Source: Macrostomum lignano (taxonomy: Eukaryota). From it: a stretch of 21,573 nt of DNA. Positions 2,529-21,517 of the stretch are shown here, one piece after another (within the stretch, counting starts at the first letter, position 1; each line of letters opens with the position of its first letter). Location: NCBI GenBank assembly GCA_002269645.1, contig NIVC01005204.1, forward strand, positions 1 through 21,573. The letters are read 5' to 3'. A program made the position numbers and the translations under genes. The notes beneath the pieces were generated by a model. That model was not told the origin of the DNA. It saw only the letters and a program-made list of their open reading frames with translations, and searched no databases.

Positions 2529-2631
2529 CTTATTGGCCACCCGAAGGGGGGCACTAGATTGCTAGTCCTAATACTAAAACTGGTGCGTTGTTTGTGTGTC
2601 TGTTCGATAACTCCTCTTATCTCTCTCTCTC

Positions 2632-2688
<57 letters not shown>

Positions 2689-2757
2689 ATCCTAATACTA
2701 AAACTGGTGCGTTGTTTGTGTGTCTGTTCGATAACTCCTATTATCTCTCTCTCTCTC

Positions 2758-2816
<59 letters not shown>

Positions 2817-2885
2817 ATCCTAATACTAAAACTGGTGCGTTGTTTGTGTGTCTGTTCGATAACTCCTCTTATCTCTCTCTCTCTC

Positions 2886-2944
<59 letters not shown>

Positions 2945-3300
2945 ATCCTAATACTAAAACTGGTGCGTTGTTTGTGTGTCTGTTCGATAACTCCTATTAT
3001 CTCTCTCTCTCTTCTCTCTTTCTCTCTCTCTCTCTCTCTTCTATCCTAATACTCTCTCTCTCTCTTCTATCTCCTAATGCTAAAACTGGTGCGTTGTTTG
3101 TGTGTATGTATGTTGTAAGTGAACTCCTAAAATACTGCCAAGTCAGCGTCGAAACTTATATGGGAAAAATTGCAAATTTTCCGGATCAGTCTTTAGGCTA
3201 TTTTAATTTTTAATTTTCACATTTTAATATCCCTAAAAAAGCAGAAAACTGCTTTTTAAACCCTCAATAACCTTCGTTGGCCACTCTGCCTGGGGCTGCA
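2529..3300 (+). mobile_element. Possible Helentron-associated (HINE/DINE-1-like) non-autonomous element with internal tandem amplification
   Basis: 5' TTGGCCACCCGAAGG (2533-2547, with a CCC-GAA-GGG mini-hairpin) has an imperfect inverted partner CCTTCGTTGGCCA (3271-3283). A TGTTTGTGTGTCTGTTCGATAACTCC block plus microsatellite follows. This layout resembles HINEs; the family call is by recollection and unverified. Confidence 0.35.
2567..3105. repeat. ~124-128 bp compound tandem repeat (unique block + (CT)n), 4 full units plus a partial
   Basis: CCTAATACTAAAACTGGTGCGTTGTTTGTGTGTCTGTTCGATAACTCCT starts at 2567, 2691, 2819 and 2947; a variant copy starts near 3073. Confidence 0.93.
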
Positions 3301-3319
3301 GCTGATAGCGTAGTCTGGC

Positions 3320-3829
3320 GGCCATTATTTCAGTGTGCCGGAAGCGGTCATTATTTCACACTTTTTTATCACGCTTTAATTGGCTGTTTTGAGAGAATTA
3401 TTTTACCCATAGACGACTGAGATACGTCTTAGTTTGACCATAGACAACACTGTGATGCGTGCTGATTTCGTTTGCGTCTTGCAAGAAATCAGGAAAGCGG
3501 GTAGTACGAGTGAAAGAAAGCTATTTGTCTTGTCAAACAACAACTATGGCTAGTGCATATCGTGAAACAGCACCGCTTATTAATTGGAAAAAATCTTCTT
3601 GTCGACGACTGAACGAACCGTGCGACCTATGCTTCAGTGGAGATGACACAGGAGATGCGGGTAAGTATAATATGTCAACATTGTAAGTAAATTAGTGGCT
3701 ATACTAATGAACATATAGAAACTGTGAATTTTTTACATTGTCCATTAATCTGCGGGTTGGATGGATTCGGAACGCGCAGTTCGCTTCTTCGAGAACTGCC
3801 ACTTCAAGGATTGCACGTTTCAGTTATAA
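3320..3829 (+). pseudogene. Crypton deletion derivative 1 (chimeric, non-coding remnant)
   Basis: ~3345-3625 is a direct repeat of ~4505-4778. It is followed by a phase-1 GTAAGT donor at 3661, a degenerate acceptor (CGG, 3753-3755) and an exon reading WMDSERAVRFFENCHFKDCTFQL* (stop 3827-3829), matching the C-terminal motif of the full-length YR. Confidence 0.7.
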
Positions 3830-4024
3830 TGAGCAACTTCTGATGAACAGTCTATGACTACCGTGTTGTTTTTGTGCTTAATGTGCGCGTTTTCCACTGT
3901 TTAGCAATTTGACGATCATTCGCGCTGGCGCGCTAATAACATTAACACTCGAAAATAGTGCAGAAGAATATATCATTATTCGCATTTTTATGCAGAACAA
4001 TACATGACTGCAAACAATGGTAGA

Positions 4025-4124
4025 TTGTATAGTATGCAACTGAGTTGAATAATGGCCAAAACTCGAGTGCGCGTAGCGCACGAGTGTCTATGGCCATTAT
4101 TCAACTCAGTTGCATACTATACAA
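4025..4124. repeat. Palindrome A: perfect 34-bp arms, 32-nt structured spacer
   Basis: TTGTATAGTATGCAACTGAGTTGAATAATGGCCA (4025-4058) is the exact reverse complement of 4091-4124; the spacer contains GTGCGC-GTA-GCGCAC. Confidence 0.95.
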
Positions 4125-4169
4125 GTGCATTGTATTTATACTTTCACTCAGCGCTCAGTCATTGTCCAG

Positions 4170-4294
4170 AAGACACAGCCTGGCGTAATGACAAACTCAA
4201 CTGGCCATTATTTCAGCTTTAACAGACGTTTGAACCATAGACGATTAGTTAAAGTATTCATATATTAACTGGCATAAGGGAATAATGTTCACAG
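4170..4294. repeat. ~125-bp inverted repeat, left arm (partner 8591-8713)
   Basis: ACAGCCTGGCGTAATGACAAACTCAACTGGCCATTATTTCAGCTTTA... matches the reverse complement of 8591-8713 with scattered mismatches. Confidence 0.9.
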
Positions 4295-4438
4295 TAATGA
4301 TAATCATAACAATAGTAATATTAGTGAGAAGAAAAATGATAGTCAAAACTATTTAGCCACAAAACTATTTAGCAGAAAACGCGCTACGCGCACTCGTGTT
4401 TGGCCATTATTTCAGCCCCTTACCTACTACGCAATCTA

Positions 4439-4526
4439 CCATTATTCCACACTTTTGCGGCCATTATTCCACACTTTTGCGGCCATTATTCCACACTTTT
4501 GTCGCTGTCATTATTCCATACTTTTT
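4439..4526 (+). repeat. 22-bp tandem boxes CCATTATTCCACACTTTTGCGG (candidate recombinase-binding sites)
   Basis: Copies at 4439, 4461 and 4483 and a variant at 4508. The same box occurs three times at 6211-6275 and inverted once at each right end (~5343-5362, ~8429-8448). Binding function is inferred. Confidence 0.75.
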
Positions 4527-5413
4527 ATCATGCTTCAATTGGCTGTTTTAAGAGTTGTTTTACCCATAGACGACTGAGTTATGTGGCTTAGTTTGACCAT
4601 AGACAACACTGTGATGAGTGCTGATTTTGCTTGCGTCTTGCAAGAAATCAGGAAAGCGAGTAGTGGGAGAAAAAGCTATTTGTCTTGTCAAACAACTATG
4701 GCTATAGTGCATCTCGTCAAACAGCCGCGCTTATTAATTGAAAAAATCTTCCTGTCGACGACTGAACGAACCGTGCGGCGCTACCTAGGAAGAAAACGCG
4801 ACCATGCAGTCTTCAACGCCTCGACGGCTATAAACGATGCCTGAAAGCGGCCAATCGATTCAGTCGAGCAGCCGCCAGTCCCAAAGAATCCCAGCTTGGA
4901 TACTGCGGTACCAAAGAGGCTCATCAGACGAAGCTCATCAGTCGCATGCCAACTTAACCAAGACGTGCATCTTTCAAATGGTAAGTTCGGCAACTATACT
5001 TGAGCACCTGTATTTCTCTTTCATAGAAAACATTCAAAATAGACCAACTCCTTTTGCAGTGCCAAATCATCAGGCTAAAGTGTCGAGCATCTTTGGGAAC
5101 TGCGGCTTTGAGAACTGCATGTTTCACTTTGGGTGACAAATTGATTTTTACATTGTCAAATTTCGACTACAAACTGATGAACTGCACTAGCTGTGACATT
5201 TATTATTAACCCTTTTCGTGTAGCTGGTACTTTAGTTTTAATGATTTTTCCTTTTTGTTCATTTACTTCTTGTTGTTCTGTATTTATTAACAAAAATACT
5301 GTGCGATGGATTTTTTCAATCCAAATGTCTATGGTACACATCAAAACTGTGGAATAATGGCCTAAATATTTTTTTCATTGCGTCTGGGTAAAAGTATAAT
5401 TACAATGTATGAT

Positions 5414-5511
5414 TATCAAGAGGTTAAGCTTCACATACAACTGCCATAGCGTCGAGGCCGGTAGGCCGAGACGCGGTAAGGCAGTTGTGTGTGAAGCGTG
5501 ACCTCTTGATA
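5414..5511. repeat. 98-bp hairpin element
   Basis: TATCAAGAGGT/ACCTCTTGATA and GCTTCACATACAACTGCC/GGCAGTTGTGTGTGAAGC arms; core GCGTC-GA-GGCC-GGTA-GGCC-GA-GACGC (5449-5474). Confidence 0.9.
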
Positions 5512-5516
5512 GTGGA

Positions 5517-5690
5517 ATTGTGTCTAGTTTCGTCCAAAAACCAATTCAAAACGGCTAGGACACAACTTCCCAGACGGGAATTGTTCACTAAGCGATTCTA
5601 GGGATTTGTGTCATAGGCATTTTCCACTTGGCGCAAGCCAGATGATGGCCATAGTGGCCCATTTGTGGCCCAAACGAAACTAGACACAAT
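5517..5690. mobile_element. MITE-like element with 17-bp perfect TIRs
   Basis: ATTGTGTCTAGTTTCGT (5517-5533) / ACGAAACTAGACACAAT (5674-5690); superfamily not assignable. Confidence 0.7.
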
Positions 5691-5884
5691 GGGCCGTATG
5701 CAGAAAGCTCTGTCTAGGGTAGTCCGGTCTTGAAAAGCCAGCCTGGACTTGGATTTGGTATGCAGAAACACAAAGTTAGACCGGTCTACTATAGACAGAA
5801 CAAGGGTAGCTAGACCATAGACTATAGACTGAACTACCCAAGTCTGGACTAGCTAGTCTGGACTAAGCTTTCTGCATACGGCCC
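5691..5884. mobile_element. MITE with GGGCCGTATGCAGAAAGCT TIRs and AT flanks (PIF/Harbinger-ISL2EU-like)
   Basis: Perfect 19-bp TIRs 5691-5709 / 5866-5884, with AT on both sides (5689-5690, 5885-5886). GG termini with an AT duplication fit ISL2EU-type elements (inference). Confidence 0.65.
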
Positions 5885-5984
5885 ATTGCATTGTTTAGCA
5901 ATTTGACGATCATTATTCGCATTTTTTATGCAGAACAATACATTACTACAAACAATGCATTGTTTTTAGGATCCTCAAACAGAA

Positions 5985-6065
5985 AAACAATGCAAAGAAT
6001 CAGCGGTCCCAGTGCGTGACAACGATTTGTCTATGGCTCGCGCCTACCGGCGCTCGCCAAACAAT
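5985..6065. repeat. Left half and core of split palindrome C (right arm at 8492-8534)
   Basis: AATCAGCGGTCCCAGTGCGTGACAACGATT matches the reverse complement of AATCGTTGCCACGCACTGGGACCGCTGATT (8489-8518) with one mismatch; hairpin core at 6035-6058. Confidence 0.85.
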
Positions 6066-6071
6066 GGTAAA

Positions 6072-6176
6072 TTGTATAGTATGCAACTGCACTGAGTTGA
6101 ATAATGGCCAAAACACGAGTGCGCGTAGCGCACGAGTGTCTATGGCCATTATTCAACGAAGTTGCATACTACACAA
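6072..6176. repeat. Palindrome B, second copy of palindrome A
   Basis: Same arms with small indels; core ACAC-GA-GTGCGC-GTA-GCGCAC-GA-GTGT. Confidence 0.92.
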
Positions 6177-6412
6177 GTGCATTGTATTTATACTTTCACT
6201 CAGCGCGCAGTCATTATTCCACACTTTTGCGGCCATTATTCCACACTTTTGTCGCGGTCATTATTCCACACTTTTCTCTTGACCATAGACTAAACGTTGC
6301 TCGCTATGTTGTCTTCAGAGGTTACCTGGACCATAGACAGAAAACTTGCAATATTGATGTCCATTTCTTATCACTCTTGACATATTAAGGGACGCTTTTT
6401 TGTAGCTTCAAA

Positions 6413-7945
6413 ATGCCTGCATTTATCAATTGGAAAAATATTCCGGTCGACTCGCTCAATGGTGTCAAGATGGACGAGCTGCAACTTTTGTCGGATACAA
6501 GCATGCATGGAGAACATCACGATGACCAGGCCCTGAGTGATTTCATTAAGTGGCTTGAGAACGATCATGGCACTGAAGAACTGCCCGAACTTCCGGAGGT
6601 GGCGGGCGACGACATGGACCTGAGTTCGAGAATGGATGGTGTAGAAATTCAGTCACTGCCAAAGTCAACGGTGGACCAGATGAATCGGCATGGGCAGGCT
6701 TTCGTGAAGTTTCTCTCTGAGACAACCAAGGAGTCGCCTGTGACGATGGAAGTGTGGAAGCTGAATGAGTACTTGCGCTATTATTATTTCGGTCTGCAGA
6801 GGACGAACGGTGAAAAGTATTCGCCGTCAAGTCTTGTGTGCATTAGAGCTGGGATACACCGGTACTTTAACCTAATTCTGAAGCGCTCTATCAACTTCAT
6901 TGACGGAGAAGAGTTTGCGAGCTCCAATCGCATGCTAAGAGTGAAGGTGAGGGAATTCCACAATGCTGGAGGCGTTACCAAGCAATTTGAAGCTATCGAG
7001 GACGCTGATCTAACAAAGTTGCGAGCATATTTCGACGGAAGTACCGCTGAGAAGTTGCAGGATGAGGTATTGTTCACCATTTTTTACGTTTTTGGAGAGC
7101 GTGGGCAAGAGCACCTGCCGGCATTGAAGGCAGCAAGCAGTCTGTTGACAAAGGTGGATGCTGATGGCAGACCCTATATGTCGCTTCCAATACTGCCTAC
7201 GAAGAATCAAATTTCCGATCCTACGCGTTGTAAGGACGACCGCCCGAAGCAAGCTAGGCTGTATGGGAAGCAGCGGGACCTGGTCAATAAAAACATTTCG
7301 CTGCTCCCATCGGATCGCAAGGACGACTGCTTGTTCTCAAGAGCACTACCGAATGACAAGATAACGGGTTGTTTGCGTTTTTTATCTCAGCAGGTACGAG
7401 GCATCAATTGGTTCACCTCATTGATGAAACGGCTTAGCAAGCAATGCAATCTATCTCGAGAGTATACAAATCATTGTATACGGGTGACGCGAATCGCGGA
7501 CTTGCACGAGACTGGCCATGGAATGAATGATATCATGTGCATCACCGGTCAGAAGAGCGAAAAAACGGTGCGCCGATATCTATCAAGGAAGCGCGACCGC
7601 GCAGTTTTTGAAGCGTCGACGGCTGTAAGCACGGCCTTAGATCGTCCTATCGAGGTGCCCAAGCAATCGAACGGCGTAAACATGCCATGCATTGAGACAG
7701 GTGTCGACGGTATCTCACCTGTCGAAGTCAAGCCGGCTAATGAAGTGCAAGTTTCAAGTGGTAAGTTTGAGTAACTAAATGAATGTCTATTTATCAGAAA
7801 ATGTTTGTTGGTGAATAAATGTTCCTTTGGTGTAAAAACAGTTTCGCTTTAAATTATTGCAGTGATGAACGCCCAGGCACAAGTGTCCCGTATTTTCGAA
7901 AATTGCCGCTTTGAAAACTGTACATTTAATTTTGGGGGTAAGTAA
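6413..7945 (+). CDS. Crypton tyrosine recombinase (DUF3504-like), join(6413..7760,7863..7945), ~476 aa
   Basis: GEKYSPSSLVCIRAGIHRY core-binding motif; R230 (FGERGQEH), K264 (PTKNQ), H354-x-x-R357 (NHCIR), Q380 (TGQKS) and Y389 (VRRY). A phase-1 GTAAGT...TTGCAG intron (7761-7862) adds VMNAQAQVSRIFENCRFENCTFNFGGK*. The unspliced ORF gives 453 aa. Confidence 0.9.
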
Positions 7946-8053
7946 TAGGCGTCTTTGACATCTGCAGTAACGTTGATAGACAGTGACATTTAATTGCTCC
8001 TGTTCTGGTTTTGTGTTCACGTTTATTTAATGCATGGATGAATGCAGCTTTTA

Positions 8054-8276
8054 CACCTTTTCACGTTCAATTTTGAACAAACTCCAGTTCTAAAAAAACT
8101 AGCGGAAATTCAATTCAGACGATTCAGACTGGGGACAATTTTGTCTATGGCTAAAACTTGCTTCGGTTGCATAATGTTTTGAACGGGGTTTGTTGCCCAA
8201 GTCTGAATTATCTGAATTGAATTTCCGCTAGTTTTTTTAGAACTGGACTTTGATCAAAATTGAACGTGAAAAGGTG
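8054..8276. mobile_element. Long-TIR MITE (~85-bp arms) with TA flanks, downstream of the YR stop
   Basis: CACCTTTTCACGTTCAATTTTGA...CTAGCGGAAATTCAATTCAGA is mirrored at ~8190-8276; TA at 8052-8053 and 8277-8278 suggests Tc1/mariner (inference). Confidence 0.7.
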
Positions 8277-8590
8277 TAGTACATGTTTTTCTTGTTTGAC
8301 ACAGTTTTGGCCATAGACTACTAGCCGTGAGGCCCTGATATCTTTTCATTTATACGAGTTCTCGTATTTGCATCCGTTGCTTATTGGTTAAAATATACTG
8401 ATTGACTCTTTTGTCTATGGAAAGTTCCAAAAGTGTGGAATAATGGCCTAAATTAAACTTCATTGCGTCTGAAGGAAAGTATATGTACAATCGTTGCCAC
8501 GCACTGGGACCGCTGATTATTTATCCATTGTTTGTTAGCTAAAATGTCTGGACTATCCTTTTTTCAGTGTATTCCAGAATTCCATGTAGA

Positions 8591-8713
8591 CTGTTTGCGA
8601 TTATTCCCTTATGTCAGTTAATAAATGCATAGTTAACTAATCGTCTATGGTTCAAACGCCTGCTAAAGCTGAAATAATGGCCAGTTGAGTTTGTCATTAC
8701 GCCAGGCTGTCTT
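8591..8713. repeat. ~125-bp inverted repeat, right arm (partner 4170-4294)
   Basis: Reverse complement of 4170-4294; contains GTCTATGG (8643) and GAAATAATGGCC. Confidence 0.9.
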
Positions 8714-8918
8714 AAGGATAATTTCAAAACCATATTCAAAACTCTCTCTTTTGCCTTTCGCTGTTTTTGTGCTGTTTCTGTTAAAATTTCAACAAAAATT
8801 ATTTGTTTGGCCGCCGAAAATTGCACGAACTTTTTCAATCCCGAAAAAACTAAAAGATAAATGCTATTAAAAAACGAGCAAAAATTAAAGAGAAAAAAGC
8901 AAATCTAATGATTGAAAC

Positions 8919-9623
8919 TTACTCAAATTCTGGCTCTTTCGGTGGTTTTTCCAAAGCAGATGAACTTTTAGTTACTTTTTTACTCCAACAACAACAACAA
9001 AGTACACTGGAGTTTTGACTCCCAATATACTCAGAATTGGCGTCATCTTGTTGTGCATTGGTGAGTAGGTTCACAATTTTGTGGTGACCATTCTGTGATG
9101 CAATGTTGAGAGGTGAACAGCCATGAACATTTTCTTGAAGATTGACGTCAGCTTCTGCTTTGATGAGTGAGCTCACAACTTGGTGGTGACCATTCTGTGA
9201 TGCAATGTAGAGAGGTGAGCAGCCATCGACTTCTTGAAGATTGACGTCAGCTTGTGCTTTGATGAGTGAGCTCACAACTTGGTGGTGACCCTTCGCTGAT
9301 GCAATGTAGAGAGGTGAGCAGCCATCGCTTCGTTGAAGATTGACGTCAGCTCTGGCTTGAATGAACATTTCGATAATTTTGACTTTTCCCATTTCACATG
9401 CAATGTGAAGCGATGAGAATGTCATCTCATTGATACTGAAGAGCCTATCAACGTTAGAAGCCATCTGCAGGTATCGTGAAATTTTAGTTTCATTTTCGAG
9501 CATAATGGCTTCCAGTATCTCCTGCTCAGTGCCATCGAGGCCCTCGCTTTGGCTTGCGGACCTGCCGAAGTTCTGCATCAGAACTGCTGCAATCGCTGTC
9601 AGAATTCTCCAAAGAGCTTCCAT
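8919..9623 (-). CDS. Intronless ankyrin-repeat protein, 234 aa, 4 ANK repeats
   Basis: LHIACEMG, SPLYIASAKGH, SPLYIASQNGH and SPLNIASQNGH repeats with ADVN linkers; hydrophobic N-terminus; C-terminal CCCCW. Confidence 0.85.
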   Translation of the reverse strand: MEALWRILTAIAAVLMQNFGRSASQSEGLDGTEQEILEAIMLENETKISRYLQMASNVDRLFSINEMTFSSLHIACEMGKVKIIEMFIQARADVNLQRSDGCSPLYIASAKGHHQVVSSLIKAQADVNLQEVDGCSPLYIASQNGHHQVVSSLIKAEADVNLQENVHGCSPLNIASQNGHHKIVNLLTNAQQDDANSEYIGSQNSSVLCCCCWSKKVTKSSSALEKPPKEPEFE

Positions 9624-11865: not shown

Positions 11866-12145
11866 TGCTTTCCGGCTGAGAACTTACTAGTAATGAGAAG
11901 AGCTTCAACTGTGAACTGGCCTTCTCCTTCATAGCGAAACTTTCACAAAGTTGCAAGGCGTTACCGTCACGTTCACGAGTCTAAAAGACGTCAACTGAAG
12001 AAGGCAATCCCAAAAATGTTTTTGGACTGATTGGGGCAACTCACTTCATCAATCGTGCATTGCAGCGAATTGTGCCAATCAAAAAACTCTTCTTGGCGCT
12101 TTCCAAATTTGGCACAACAGGAAAGTTCGACAAGTGAGAGATTAC

Positions 12146-15801
<3,656 letters not shown>

Positions 15802-16263
15802 ATCTCATCATCATCATCATCATCATCATCCATCTATCACATCATCATCATAGAAAGCTCCCTAGCGCAAAACTACTTTCAAATTTATATCCACAACAAA
15901 AATTTTTGTGAAAAATCTGTATTTATGCATTAATCATATATTATATTTTCACAGAAACACAATATTACAAGCTAAGATAAGCTGACATGAAGCTAACAAT
16001 GTATATTTTTTTAATATATACGAACTTTGCATGTATGTAATAATGGTTCGATTATAACATTTCTACTAATGATACTATTAAAAGTACACAATAATGCTAA
16101 GAATCATGTACAAGACTAAACTGATACAACTGACACAGACATTATATTTTTAAAATAAATTCATTAAAAGTTTTTTTGATTAAAAGTTACTATTTAGGAG
16201 TTATTTACCCTCCACTAATTAGTGGAGTCTGAAGGACAACACTGGGGCGCGTTAACAATATTT

Positions 16264-16665
16264 ACTGTCTCCCTCTCACTGTCTCCTTCTCACTGTCTCC
16301 CTCTCACTGTCTCCCTCTCACTGTCTCCCTCTCACTGTCTCCTTCTCACTGTCTCCCTCTCACTGTCTCCTTCTCACTGTCTCCCTCTCACGGTCTCCTT
16401 CTCACTGTCTCCCTCTCACTGTCTCCCTCTCACTGTCTCCCTCTCACGGTCTCCTTCTCACTGTCTCCCTCTCACTGTCTCCCTCTCACTGTCTCCTTCT
16501 CACTGTCTCCCTCTCACTGTCTCCCTCTCACTGTCTCCCTCTCACTGTCTCCCTCTCACTGTCTCCCTCTCACTGTCTCCCTCTCCTTGTCTCCCTCTCA
16601 CTGTCTTCCTATCATTGTCTCCCTCTCACTGTCTCCCTCTCACTGTAACCTTCTCACTGTCTCCC
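16264..16665. repeat. 14-bp minisatellite ACTGTCTCC(C/T)TCTC, ~29 copies
   Basis: Direct reading. Confidence 0.95.
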
Positions 16666-16983
16666 TTATAACAAGTTACCATTTCAAGTTACCAATGTTA
16701 CAGTATTTGAACACTGGGCGCTGAAAAGACAGACACGGAAAAGTTTGCAGAAATTTTAGTGCACATCAATACTATAGCAATTCTAATACTAGGCCTGGAT
16801 TAACAATTATCAAATCTGTTCATACTTCAGTAATAAACATTCTAGAGACAAACACGACTAAGCGCAAAACAAGCAATAAATATTTTGTGACTAAACAACC
16901 CGCCGAGGACCTCTAAGATCTGGACTGAAAATAAAAGTAGTCTAGTAGTATAAAAGATACTAAATAGTCTAGTATCTGCTAAA

Positions 16984-17044
<61 letters not shown>

Positions 17045-17045
17045 G

Positions 17046-17082
<37 letters not shown>

Positions 17083-17103
17083 ATAACTAACTAACTAACT
17101 AAA

Positions 17104-17172
<69 letters not shown>

Positions 17173-17173
17173 G

Positions 17174-17255
<82 letters not shown>

Positions 17256-17256
17256 G

Positions 17257-17300
<44 letters not shown>

Positions 17301-17301
17301 G

Positions 17302-17338
<37 letters not shown>

Positions 17339-17339
17339 A

Positions 17340-17408
<69 letters not shown>

Positions 17409-17409
17409 G

Positions 17410-17451
<42 letters not shown>

Positions 17452-17452
17452 G

Positions 17453-17494
<42 letters not shown>
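16984..17494. repeat. (TAAC)n microsatellite, ~128 units
   Basis: Direct reading; occasional TGAC, TAAA and CGAA variants. Confidence 0.98.
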
Positions 17495-17649
17495 ACTAAA
17501 CTAAGCTAAAAAACTTACTACCTAATTAGAAAACTAACTATACCAATAACTTTTGACCATTTTCAATCCAAGTCTTCTAAGGTCCTTGAACACAGACTCT
17601 CAAACCGACGCAGCTTTCCGTTCCCAATCCCTTCTGTCAAGCGACTCCG

Positions 17650-18675
17650 TCAGTCGCGGTGGCTTCTGGACAGAGCGGTCATCTGGTACTCCTCAGTCGG
17701 CAGGAACGGATCGTCCAGAGTCTCGCTGATGCCCACCTCAGCGACACCGGCCAGGGAGAGTCCGCTTGGACCGGCGCCGCCGCTGCCACCGCCACAGCCG
17801 CCTTCTCCACCGCTGATGCCGAAGCCTCTGACAACTCGGCTGGCTCCGCTGCTTCTCTCTGTGGCTCTCGAAATTTCGTTGCGACCTCCGCGACCGACGC
17901 TGCCAACGCCACCGCCTCGGCGACCGCCGCCGCCATAAGCGGCGCCGTTTCTACCGACGCCCGCGCCTCTCCCTCCAGCGCCTCCGCCGCCTCCGCCTCC
18001 GCCGCCAACGCCAGCTGCAGCGCGACAAGCTGTCGGAAGGGCGGCGCCGGCTGTTCGACGAAAATTGCGGCTCAGACAGACGAAGATCAAAAAGTTGCAG
18101 GCGGTGTCCAGCGACACCAGCGTGTCGTTGAAGCTGAAGAACCAGTCGGCGGTGGTGAACTGCTGCCAGTCGAACATCAGCATCACGGCTCCTGGCGCTT
18201 CGAACACGCAGAAGGTCACCGCCAGGCAGAGCACGATCGCCGTTGCTATGCGAGTGTTCCGACGCTGATTCTGAGCCATGTCGCTTCCGGCTGGCGTTGG
18301 AAGCAGCTGGTTCTGCTGTTGCTGTTGCTGCTGATGCTGCTGCTGCTGCTGCAGGAGAAACGGTCTGTAGGTAGCGTAGAGAAAAGCAGCCATCACAATG
18401 GAACTGATCAACACCACTGGTATGGGTATGCCGGACTGGAATATCCGGGACATTCTCAGCAGCTCCTGGAACCGGGATCTCGGATAGGCGATGAACAGGA
18501 CGCAGAAGGTGAGCGAGATGAGCAGCACCAGGTTGAAGACGGCCAGCTGGGCGCACCTGGTCAGACGGTTGCGCACTGCGATGGGGCTCAGGGTGGCCAA
18601 GGTGCGGAACAGAGTCACGCAGGTGGTCCACTGGTTGCGCTGCAGCATGGCCGCGTTCGCGAATGCGTATAGGAT
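17650..18675 (-). CDS. Terminal exon (TM3-TM7 and C-tail) of a class A GPCR, FMRFamide/sex-peptide-receptor/Srw-like
   Basis: QWTTCVTLFRTLATLSP (TM3), GIPIPVVL (TM5), LCLAVTFCVFEAP (TM6), LDTACNFLIFVCLSRNFRR (TM7/H8). An acceptor CCCTGCAG on the minus strand at 18676-18683 extends the frame by 9 codons (ILYAFANAA). TM1-2 exons were not found in the window. Confidence 0.82.
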   Translation of the reverse strand: MLYAFANAAMLQRNQWTTCVTLFRTLATLSPIAVRNRLTRCAQLAVFNLVLLISLTFCVLFIAYPRSRFQELLRMSRIFQSGIPIPVVLISSIVMAAFLYATYRPFLLQQQQQHQQQQQQQNQLLPTPAGSDMAQNQRRNTRIATAIVLCLAVTFCVFEAPGAVMLMFDWQQFTTADWFFSFNDTLVSLDTACNFLIFVCLSRNFRRTAGAALPTACRAAAGVGGGGGGGGGAGGRGAGVGRNGAAYGGGGRRGGGVGSVGRGGRNEISRATERSSGASRVVRGFGISGGEGGCGGGSGGAGPSGLSLAGVAEVGISETLDDPFLPTEEYQMTALSRSHRD

Positions 18676-18720: not shown

Positions 18721-19512
18721 TAAGGTCATTTGGCTTGGATTCTCAAGGTCATTTGGTTTGGATTCTCCAAAGTCATCTGGTTTGGATTCCCCAAGGTCAT
18801 TTGGTTTGGATTCTCCAAAGTTTGGTTTGGATTCTCCAAAGTCATTTGGTTTGGATTCCCCAAGGTCATTTGGTTTGGATTCTCCAAAGTCATTTAGTTT
18901 GGATTCCCCAAGGTCATTTGGTTTTGATTCTCCAAAGTCATTTAGTTTGGATTCCCCAAGGTCATTTGGTTTGGATTCTACAAGGTCGCACAGTTTATAT
19001 TCTTCAAGGTCATTTGGTTTGGATTCCCTAAGTTCACTTGTTTTGGATTTACCACGGTCTCTAAGGATACTGAGTTTAGATTCTCCAAGGTAAGTTACTC
19101 GTAGTTTTGGATTCCTTAAGCACTTTGGTTTGGTTTGGATTCCCCAGGTCATTTGATTTGGATTCCCCAAGGTCATTTGGTTTGGATTCCCCAGGTCATT
19201 TGGTTTGGATTCCCCAAGGTCATTTGGTTTGGATTACTTAAGGTTATTTGGTTTGGATTCCCCAAGGTCATTTGGTTTGGATTCCCCAAGGTCATTTGGT
19301 TTTGATTGGGTTTAAGGTCATTTGGTTTGGATTGGATTGGATTATTGGATTATTTATTGGATTAAATTGGATTATTTACTTAAGGCGATTTGGTTTGGAT
19401 TTCCCAAGGTTGTTCGGTTTAGATTCCCCAAAGCCATTTGGTTTGGATTTCCCAAGGTTATTTTGTTTGGATTCCCCAAGGGCACTTGGGCCGGAATTTC
19501 CCCTGGGTCATT
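18721..19512. repeat. 24-bp minisatellite CCAAGGTCATTTGGTTTGGATTCC, interrupted and decaying
   Basis: Direct reading; lies in the predicted GPCR intron. Confidence 0.93.
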
Positions 19513-20175: not shown

Positions 20176-20804
20176 ATGAGAGCCACATGCAGCCGGTAGA
20201 CGGAGTTTGCCAGCCGCAGCTCCAGGGCATACTAAATGTGCCGGAAAGTCGAGTTGTAGCATCTGGGTGCTTGACAGACAGACAGAACGAGTCTTCCAAT
20301 GTAAAAAGTCAATGCTCCTCAGACAGAAAAGCTGGGACTCAGAAAGGAAAAGCCATAGATGTGCTTGCAGAGATTGTCTTTCAGAAGCAGCAATGACCGG
20401 CAAAGCTGCACTTTAACATTGAGTTATTAATGGTTTTGAAAGCAGCGAAGCCATAAGCTATGGTCGCGACATTGACTGCCCTCAGTGGCAGCCCTAAGAA
20501 AGTCTGCCCTCATGGCATTCTCATATGGCCTCCGCATGAGTTCCTAATCAAATGCTTCGGTCAACAAAGTATGAGAAACATTTTCCATTGGAAGTCTGCC
20601 GCCATATTTTACATGAAATTTAACTGTGCCCGAAAATGCGAACTCGGGATTGCAGCACGGGTGCTCGAGTGTGACATGAGCTGCGGGCCTGCAGAGTGCA
20701 TTTCTATCGTGATTTAAAGTCTGCTTTAACCAGTGGGCGCGAAATCTGGGATTTTGGATAGGAGAGATGGATGAAACTGAAAAAAGGCAGGGAGAGATCG
20801 CACA

Positions 20805-21517
<713 letters not shown>

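Follow-up and report, generated by a model that had tools for sequence, protein, structure and literature searches.

Crypton elements are DNA transposons (Goodwin et al. 2003; Kojima & Jurka 2011, PMC3212892) whose mechanism has never been experimentally demonstrated, according to a 2026 review (PMC13565253). The contig NIVC01005204.1 of Macrostomum lignano (assembly GCA_002269645.1), analysed here over 21,573 nucleotides (nt) and referred to as the window, carries two related copies of such an element, an internally deleted one (copy 1) and a full-length one (copy 2). Copy 2 divides a palindrome exactly at an ACAAT direct repeat. The question raised by this locus is whether a structured palindrome is the target of the element, as the first-pass annotation of the sequence had proposed, or whether the palindrome has another origin. 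The reading preferred here, held at a probability of about three in four, is that copy 2 is an intact, probably autonomous CryptonA-like transposon with ends common to its lineage, and that it is nested, by way of an ACAAT(G) core, in the hairpin of a smaller resident element, termed mini-Crypton X.

Ends, gene and split palindrome of the full-length copy

The limits of the element were taken from the alignment of its two copies. At the left, identity begins at CAAACAATGGTA (4011 in copy 1, 6058 in copy 2) and amounts to 93% thereafter, with unrelated sequence upstream. This common start had been recognised in the first-pass annotation, and it needs correction only in that the identity between the copies reaches 3 nt further, to CAAACAAT. 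At the right, the match stops after TACAAT (5406 and 8491), where it had been said to stop, and the downstream sequences are unrelated. Homology is confined to the interval from ACAAT to ACAAT, which gives 4014-5406 for copy 1 (repeats at 4014-4018 and 5402-5406) and 6061-8491 for copy 2. The latter is 2,426 base pairs (bp) long with one core counted, and its family termini read ACAATGGTARATTGTATAG... at the left and ...GAAAGTATAWDTACAAT at the right. The chance of finding a given 5-mer at two fixed ends is about 1/1024, and ACAAT is moreover found in both copies and in distant relatives. The earlier view that this repeat is not a random target-site duplication holds on these grounds.

The flanks of copy 2 form inverted repeats (5994-6027 against 8489-8522, 34 nt, 94% complementary). 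When copy 2 is removed and 6065 is joined to 8492, a continuous palindrome of 119 nt results, as had been predicted; it is called P5 here. Its DNA fold reaches -49.1 kcal/mol, against a mean of -15.6 for 200 dinucleotide shuffles (z = -14.6), with 0 of the 200 shuffles as stable. The predicted empty allele lacking copy 2 reads ...GGCGCTCGCCAAACAATCGTTGCCACGCACTGG..., and the outer bounds of P5 are ACAATG (5987) and CATTGT (8526). Since the GC-rich tip hairpin of P5 (6036-6058) lies entirely within the left flank, copy 2 was inserted immediately 3′ of it. A BLAST search of every module against the window returned no second copy of the P5 palindrome and no Crypton sequence outside 3240-8760.

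The origin of P5 is indicated by its likeness to copy 2 itself. The first 125 bp of copy 2, overlooked in the first reading, form a hairpin of the same class (H; -40.1 kcal/mol, z = -9.8), and the two structures agree in the ACAATG/CATTGT of their bases, in their GC-rich tips and in a tandem G·A mismatch. The tip of H reads CGAGTGCGC-GTA-GCGCACGAG with this tandem mismatch, and H also has asymmetric boxes, CCAAAAC and GTCTATGG. On its minus strand P5 starts ACAATGGATAAAT, as do H (ACAATGGTAAAT...) and distant relatives (ACAATGGATGAAT...). The minus-strand tip follows the motif of the clade, namely CGAG, GC stem, GGTA, GC stem and CGAG, with a loop identical to that of the neighbouring hairpin P1. 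Judged by its sequence, P5 is not host DNA but the putative left-end hairpin of mini-Crypton X, a resident element that lies in reverse orientation. Because of this start, the tip, the CATTGT end and a 35-bp body with terminal inverted repeats (TIRs), the interval 5958-8531 minus copy 2 is read as X. It would be a single element made up of 5958-6065 and 8492-8531, of 154 bp without copy 2. A right end of X was also sought downstream of 8531, where no TIR partner was found; P5 was then re-read as reverse-oriented, with the body, P4b, on its other side. A perfect 16-bp palindrome, AAACAATGCATTGTTT, at 5950-5965 is read as the tail-to-tail junction of X and the adjoining module P4a.

The inverted flanks might instead belong, as long TIRs, to a composite element of larger size (5987-8531), in which the Crypton is enclosed. 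Inverted repeats of 34-40 bp do lie directly outside copy 2, and the unit that they enclose is bounded by ACAATG and CATTGT. However, copy 1 has the same termini between wholly different flanks, and at the ends of relatives the same core is present but such arms are not. The tip hairpin is complete on one side only, which is expected of a hairpin cut beside its tip, and the arms bear the hairpin signature of the clade. A composite element is very improbable in the face of these observations, and P5 is treated below as the hairpin of X.

Imperfect TIRs of about 30 bp, likewise overlooked in the first reading, are present at the ends of copy 2. About 24 of 30 positions agree between TIR_L (6181-6210) and the reverse complement of 8459-8491, which contains TIR_R. 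Both TIRs are followed by an inverted copy of a 22-nt subterminal repeat and by a CCATAGAC box. The 22-nt repeat is proposed as a candidate accessory binding site of the recombinase. The 8-mer boxes, CCATAGAC or GTCTATGG, number 16 in the window, and all 16 fall within 3407-8643, the Crypton cluster, where about 0.5 would be expected per whole window. The CCATAGAC box is also found in a relative from M. lignano, L001 (5620-5900 and 7500-7560), and in the metagenome locus L004 (at about 190; about 34% protein identity), and it is a candidate accessory (“arm-type”) binding site. A foldback of 227 bp in the 3′ untranslated part of copy 2 (8052-8278) has ACAAT and GTCTATGGC near its centre, and its edges do not lie at an ACAAT core. 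It is either an intrinsic part of copy 2 or a nested foldback element.

Imperfect TIRs together with a 5-bp flanking repeat could also be understood as the work of a DDE transposase. ACAAT would then be a target-site duplication, created by a staggered cut at the TIRs, and the recombinase would be cargo or a resolvase. No DDE transposase open reading frame (ORF) was found in copy 2, however, either in the list of ORFs or by Pfam, and the supposed duplication does not vary in sequence between the two copies, nor in distant families. The length of the common sequence varies from 4 to 8 nt, which resembles microhomology, and the left ACAAT lies outside the hairpin and not beside TIR_L. The probability of this explanation is close to nil, and ACAAT is taken as a crossover core in what follows.

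The tyrosine recombinase gene of copy 2 consists of two exons and a predicted intron (Table 1), with a predicted spliced product of 476 amino acids (aa). Splicing restores the C-terminal tail F-x-N-C-x-F-x-x-C-x-F that is common to relatives. The nearest named homologues are the “Tyr recombinase domain-containing” proteins of Macrostomum lignano (52% identity), and more distant homologues carry PF00589, PF12012 (DUF3504) and PF25561 (QRICH1). Of the catalytic R...K...H-x-x-R...[H/W]...Y set of tyrosine recombinases, R230, K264 and H354 do not vary among 24 aligned relatives, R357 hardly does, and the Tyr is located within VRRYL. A profile of the family has a match in the catalytic C-terminus of XerA (PDB 5hxy), with E = 2e-4. 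Among the 24 aligned proteins Pfam recognised PF25561 in 20, PF00589 in 19 and PF12012/DUF3504 in 13, and it gave no match to GCR1_C in these proteins or in the window protein. As the catalytic residues are kept, the gene is not considered to be domesticated. Over copy 2 as a whole, Pfam returned weak recombinase-related matches and one weak, unrelated, sub-threshold match. Beyond the recombinase gene, no other sense ORF of at least 80 aa was found in the 2.43 kb of copy 2. This, together with the tyrosine recombinase, assigns the element to the Crypton type and not to DIRS or Ngaro. The repeats found in copy 2 are the hairpin, the short TIRs and the 22-nt repeats only, without long terminal or split direct repeats. 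Its ORFs include no reverse transcriptase, RNase H or methyltransferase, features by which DIRS, Ngaro and VIPER differ from Cryptons.

Nested modules and the choice of target

Copy 2 and X belong to a head-to-tail and nested array in the window, composed of at least six ACAAT-bounded modules (Table 1). Within the cluster at 3892-8531, each module junction is ACAAT(G) or its complement. When the outer ends of inverted-repeat units between 3.8 and 8.8 kb were compared with random placements, 14 of 14 fell within 8 nt of ACAAT/ATTGT, a result equalled in 0 of 20,000 placements. The interior of copy 1 is an internally deleted recombinase gene of a sister family, 87% identical to copy 0. Both copies share the same internal deletion, in which LINWK..LPVD is fused to TERTVRRYL, and are therefore non-autonomous. 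The gene remnant of copy 0 resembles a more distant protein, P0001 (L002). This suggests that copies 1 and 0 represent an amplified non-autonomous family, possibly a chimera.

Three insertions can be reconstructed in the window. Copy 2 entered the interior of the X hairpin with ACAAT in common with its target; copy 1 entered at the junction of P4a′ and P1 with ACAATG in common; and a Crypton fragment, Y, entered a 22-nt repeat of copy 1 with AATG in common. The flanks of Y read CATT...CATT (AATG on its own strand), and its empty site is preserved in copy 2 at 6207-6219. All three targets (3/3) are Crypton sequence. The entry point of copy 2 is an internal ACAAT, or ATTGT on the strand of X, located 3 nt from the tip-hairpin stem. 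The role of crossover sequence, assigned to ACAAT in the first-pass annotation, stands up well, as the motif bounds the three window insertions, the modules of the cluster and the ends of relatives with 30-34% identity. As a putative crossover core that generalises across the lineage, ACAAT(G) is strongly supported by these comparisons. The junction alleles of copy 2 and Y would locate the exchange in AAT (positions 3-5 of ACAATG) or beside it, a position that heteroduplex repair could blur.

The proposal that a structured palindrome is the target found no support in the reconstruction of empty sites. Only one of seven, that of copy 2, is palindromic (z = -9.7), and the six others have z values from -1.4 to +0.8. 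The palindrome is thus not a general target, and P5 appears to be the hairpin of a resident mini-element. The M. lignano target was also considered as a palindrome and rejected, with a best ungapped symmetry of 10/15 and a fold z of +0.6. From the sequences, the copy 2 event is best described as a nested insertion into a related element, and not as the targeting of a host palindrome.

A related possibility is that palindromes or hairpins are preferred, and not exclusive, targets. The recombinase would then recognise hairpins, and the tip-side ACAAT/ATTGT would be a genuine secondary site, as in attC x attC recombination. The short distance between copy 2 and the tip stem of P5 (only 3 nt) fits with this, and a distant relative, L016, has ATTGT at an equal distance from its CGAG tip motif. 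Internal ACAATG/CATTGT pairs are found in hairpin arms of L003 and L014, and copy 1 adjoins the base of hairpin P1. The six non-palindromic sites point in the opposite direction, and a single in-hairpin event is known, with the others at module junctions or 22-nt repeats. Palindromic modules also make up most of the local sequence, so that landing in a palindrome was likely in any case. A preference for hairpins is unlikely when both sides are weighed, and nested insertion at the ACAAT(G) core is retained.

A mechanism may be outlined for this nested insertion. The recombinase would join the two direct ACAAT cores, and a double-stranded circle would be excised. In this circle TIR_R, ACAATG, the hairpin, CATTGT and TIR_L would make one long palindrome, and the predicted circle junction is GAAGGAAAGTATATGTACAATGGTAAATTGTATAGTATGC, also written …GTATATGTACAATGGTAAATTGTATAG…. 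The circle would then integrate by conservative site-specific recombination between ACAATG and a target with 4-6 bases of the core. The 22-nt repeats, the CCATAGAC boxes or the hairpin probably recruit the recombinase. Such recruitment would favour core-like sites inside resident Crypton modules or at their ends, and arrays would be built in this way.

Several points weigh against the account of copy 2 and X given here. Copies with these termini number only two in the window, and the boundaries of single-copy metagenome elements were drawn from their architecture, not from a comparison of copy with copy. The treatment of X as one unit, hairpin plus 35-bp body, is a parse without a second copy in the window. 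The window protein alone scores sub-threshold in Pfam, and the second catalytic His is replaced by Gln in the Macrostomum group; for these reasons recombinase activity is assumed. Classical inverted recombinase arms of 11-13 bp around the ACAAT core were not found by eye. Excision and the circular intermediate rest on inference, and the preference for Crypton modules is confounded, as all observed events come from one repeat-rich cluster.

Left-end hairpins across the lineage and the surrounding DNA

A metagenome scan for relatives returned 80 loci. Their comparison with copy 2 indicates a conserved architecture for the lineage, which would consist of the core, a hairpin of about 80-125 nt, the inverse core, TIR_L, the recombinase gene, TIR_R and a second core. 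The gene is preceded by a hairpin of about 80-125 nt in at least 11 contigs of the closer metagenome group (30-34% protein identity), and in eight of these ATTGT comes directly after the hairpin. The relative from M. lignano, L001, has a hairpin at 5617-5720 that starts ATGGTAGATT, TIRs at 5723-5745 and 7547-7569, CCATAGAC boxes and a TAAT direct repeat. Terminal direct repeats elsewhere are CAATG (L004), ACAATAT (L007), ACAATA (L016) and ATAATGTA (L009). TIRs and inverted subterminal repeats as in copy 2 recur in L001, L004, L007, L009 and L016. Metagenome relatives below about 30% identity mostly have no hairpin in their short contigs, and the architecture is therefore claimed for the closer subclade only.

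Insertion of one element beside or into another is also seen among these relatives. L004 sits at CAATG within subterminal repeats of its own family. In L014 (1-4050), two different Cryptons with 64% nucleotide identity in the gene are in head-to-tail tandem, with the right end of a third element upstream and ACAATG at 3 of 3 junctions. A mini module of 30 bp (CATTGTAGAC...CGATACAATG) follows the second element. A near-perfect palindrome with 51-nt arms is located at the right end of another relative (L015, 1932-2037). Its arm resembles the TIR of that element. After the palindrome comes ACAATGGATGAATAC, with which another hairpin begins, and the palindrome may represent a head-to-head junction.

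The hairpins are conserved in structure. Comparison of 17 tip regions gave compensatory changes in 18 of 18 pairs, and the covariation score of the tip was 0.608, against 0.19 in shuffles and 0.14-0.20 with slid partners. This covariation indicates that the hairpin is under selection. The tip helix is formed by 4-7 GC base pairs and closed by a loop of GTA, GTTA, GTCA, GGTA or GAA. In 14 of 19 hairpins a 2x2 internal loop follows below the helix, and each of its arms reads GA on the gene-sense strand. The shared motif consists of CGAG, GC stem, a 3-4-nt loop, GC stem and CGAG, which gives the tandem G·A mismatch on the gene-sense strand, and ACAAT and ATTGT stand at the two bases in most hairpins. 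Over whole stems, the sense strand has 52 G·A/A·G mismatches against 5 T·C/C·T (p = 6e-11), in counts that are not phylogenetically independent. The conserved G·A mismatches break the symmetry of the duplex and give the site polarity. This asymmetry does not prove single-strand folding. When the strand bias of wobble pairs was used as a test of such folding, there was no bias (G·T 12 against A·C 10), and the energy difference between the strands of H is negligible (-40.1 against -39.2 kcal/mol); these results do not support folding. A scan of the window against Rfam matched no family, and the hairpins are consequently not a known RNA.

A tentative suggestion, doubtful at present, is that the left-end hairpin may be a functional recombination site in folded form, either as a single strand or as an extruded cruciform, by analogy with integron attC sites and the attP hairpin of CTXphi. 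Strand and polarity would then be determined by the asymmetric boxes and the tandem G·A mismatch, and this would account for a crossover that is always at the TIR_R-side base. The ACAAT-bounded chains of hairpin plus body would be a eukaryotic, self-encoded counterpart of cassette arrays, and the position of copy 2 beside a hairpin tip would record a hairpin-by-hairpin recombination event.

The Crypton cluster is embedded in very repeat-rich DNA. A 42-bp satellite occupies 1-2088 with about 50 copies (98% matches), and the long “ORFs” at 1-2100 are artefacts of this repeat. A (CTAT)n microsatellite of 3.7 kb and about 925 units lies at 12146-15838. It explains two “ORFs” of 1,239 and 1,300 aa (12031-15933), which have no Pfam match. 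The ankyrin-repeat and Srw-like ORFs listed in Table 1, together with the satellites, show that this is an animal, repeat-rich region.

Table 1. Coordinates of features in the window (locus names are given for features of relatives)
Feature	Position	Strand	Remarks
Left ACAAT core of copy 2 (putative crossover microhomology)	6061-6065	+	
Right ACAAT core of copy 2	8487-8491	+	
Left-end hairpin H of copy 2	6061-6185	+	125 bp; ACAATG outer base, CATTGT inner base
TIR_L of copy 2	6181-6210	+	ATTGTATTTATACTTTCACTCAGCGC...; aligned with reverse complement of right end
TIR_R of copy 2	8459-8491	-	...CTGAAGGAAAGTATATGTACAAT
22-nt subterminal repeat, three direct copies	6207-6275	+	GCGGYCATTATTCCACACTTTT
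22-nt subterminal repeat, one inverted copy near right end	8428-8448	-	
Tyrosine recombinase gene, exon 1	6413-7760	+	uninterrupted ORF to 7774
Predicted intron	7761-7862	+	GT...AG
Tyrosine recombinase gene, exon 2	7863-7945	+	encodes ...VMNAQAQVSRIFENCRFENCTFNFGGK*
Foldback in 3′ untranslated part of copy 2	8052-8278		227 bp; 83-nt arms, 94% complementary
P5, left part (putative hairpin of mini-Crypton X)	5987-6065	-	whole tip 6036-6058 (GGCTCGCGCC-TACC-GGCGCTCGCC) and one GTCTATGG box (6029)
P5, right part	8492-8531	-	terminates in CATTGT (8526-8531)
P4b, putative mini body of X	5958-5992	-	35 bp; 10-bp perfect TIRs (CATTGTTTTT...AAAAACAATG)
X with copy 2 inside	5958-8531		
Copy 0, further internally deleted Crypton of sister family	3290-3891	+	left limit approximate
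P4a′, second copy of P4a	3892-4019		
Copy 1, hairpin and body	4014-5406	+	copy-2-type hairpin, TIRs, ACAAT(G) ends
Y, Crypton fragment in 22-nt repeat region of copy 1	4164-4443	-	280 bp; left end AATGGTAGATTGCG...
P1, hairpin	5402-5521	+	tip CGAGGCC-GGTA-GGCCGAG; z = -11.1
P2, body	5517-5690	+	17-bp perfect TIRs (ATTGTGTCTAGTTTCGT); P1 and P2 form mini element 5402-5690
P3, module	5686-5890	+	CAATGGGCCG...CGGCCCATTG
P4a, module	5889-5957	+	CATTGTTTAGC...CAAACAATG
Tips with CGAG motif, window and L001	6108-6136, 5447-5478, 6036-6058 (-); L001 5650-5690		
Tips with CGAG motif, metagenome	L003, L004, L008, L013, L014, L016, L017, L021		
Further tandem arrays	2566-3109, 16264-16666, 16979-17540, 18722-19489, 20804-21517		128-bp unit with (TC)n, 14-bp minisatellite, (CTAA)n, 24-bp repeat, (ACAG)n
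Ankyrin-repeat protein ORF	8919-9623	-	Ank_2, E = 3e-43
Srw-like seven-transmembrane G-protein-coupled receptor ORF	17650-18648	-	weak match, E = 1e-5

Significance and comparison with known systems

The locus and its relatives provide a full and testable anatomy of the ends of one animal Crypton lineage. It comprises a core of 5-6 bp, a hairpin that covaries and has a strand-specific G·A motif, TIRs, and sites that are candidates for an accessory role. Animal Cryptons were reported to lack recognisable ends and are for that reason hard to annotate (PMC13565253, PMC3212892). The anatomy offers a rule by which non-autonomous mini-elements of 150-290 bp can be found, as well as exact substrates for biochemistry, namely the junction, the hairpin and the core. 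Elements of this lineage appear to build arrays by inserting into each other, and a eukaryotic parallel to the hairpin-based recombination of bacterial tyrosine recombinases is possible.

With Cryptons the element shares a lone tyrosine-recombinase gene, the lack of a reverse transcriptase, and terminal direct repeats of 4-6 bp that are read as crossover microhomology between circle and target. A fixed pentanucleotide core of the lineage is shared with CryptonS, being TATGG at both termini there and ACAAT here. Cryptons have been described as having no TIRs. Animal Cryptons were reported in 2011 without any terminal repeats (PMC3212892), and 2026 reviews cite the TATGG termini of CryptonS only (PMC13565253, PMC13465315). 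In contrast, the present lineage combines a direct-repeat core with TIRs of about 30 bp, subterminal repeats and a left-end hairpin of about 80-125 nt. The TIRs are treated as a variant feature and not as grounds for exclusion from the Cryptons, and the lack of terminal repeats in animal Cryptons probably reflects that 2011 report rather than a true definition of the family. No prior description of the hairpin, palindrome, TIRs or arrays was found in the Crypton and Macrostomum literature, Repbase Reports lying outside that search.

The recombinase resembles those of CryptonA and the DUF3504-related group (KCTD1, ZMYM and QRICH1 progenitors) in its matches to PF12012, PF25561 and PF00589, in having no GCR1_C and in its animal host. 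It differs in the conserved Cys-rich tail (F-x-N-C-x-F-x-x-C-x-F) and in its kept catalytic residues. Recombinases of this type are the source of the DUF3504, ZMYM and QRICH1 genes, which lends interest to the features in DNA that the proteins once recognised.

The likeness to integrons concerns the sites. The attC site is also an imperfect palindrome in which structure is conserved over sequence, with inverse cores at its bases (R″/R′, compared with ACAATG/CATTGT here), a strand-specific asymmetry and a crossover at one base of the hairpin. Typical attC sites are about half as long as the present hairpins. Integron cassettes likewise form head-to-tail arrays with a common core. This is an analogy only: in the present lineage the mobile unit brings its own recombinase, attI and a platform promoter are absent, and the host is a eukaryote.

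A second parallel is offered by integrative mobile elements exploiting Xer (IMEX) at dif, such as CTXphi, and by tandem prophage arrays. In these systems serial integration also takes place at a short core, the site is regenerated, and arrays of unrelated elements result; in CTXphi the substrate is a folded hairpin of two inverted sites. IMEX and CTXphi depend on host XerCD and a single chromosomal dif, whereas the elements of the present lineage have their own recombinase and use their own ends as sites.

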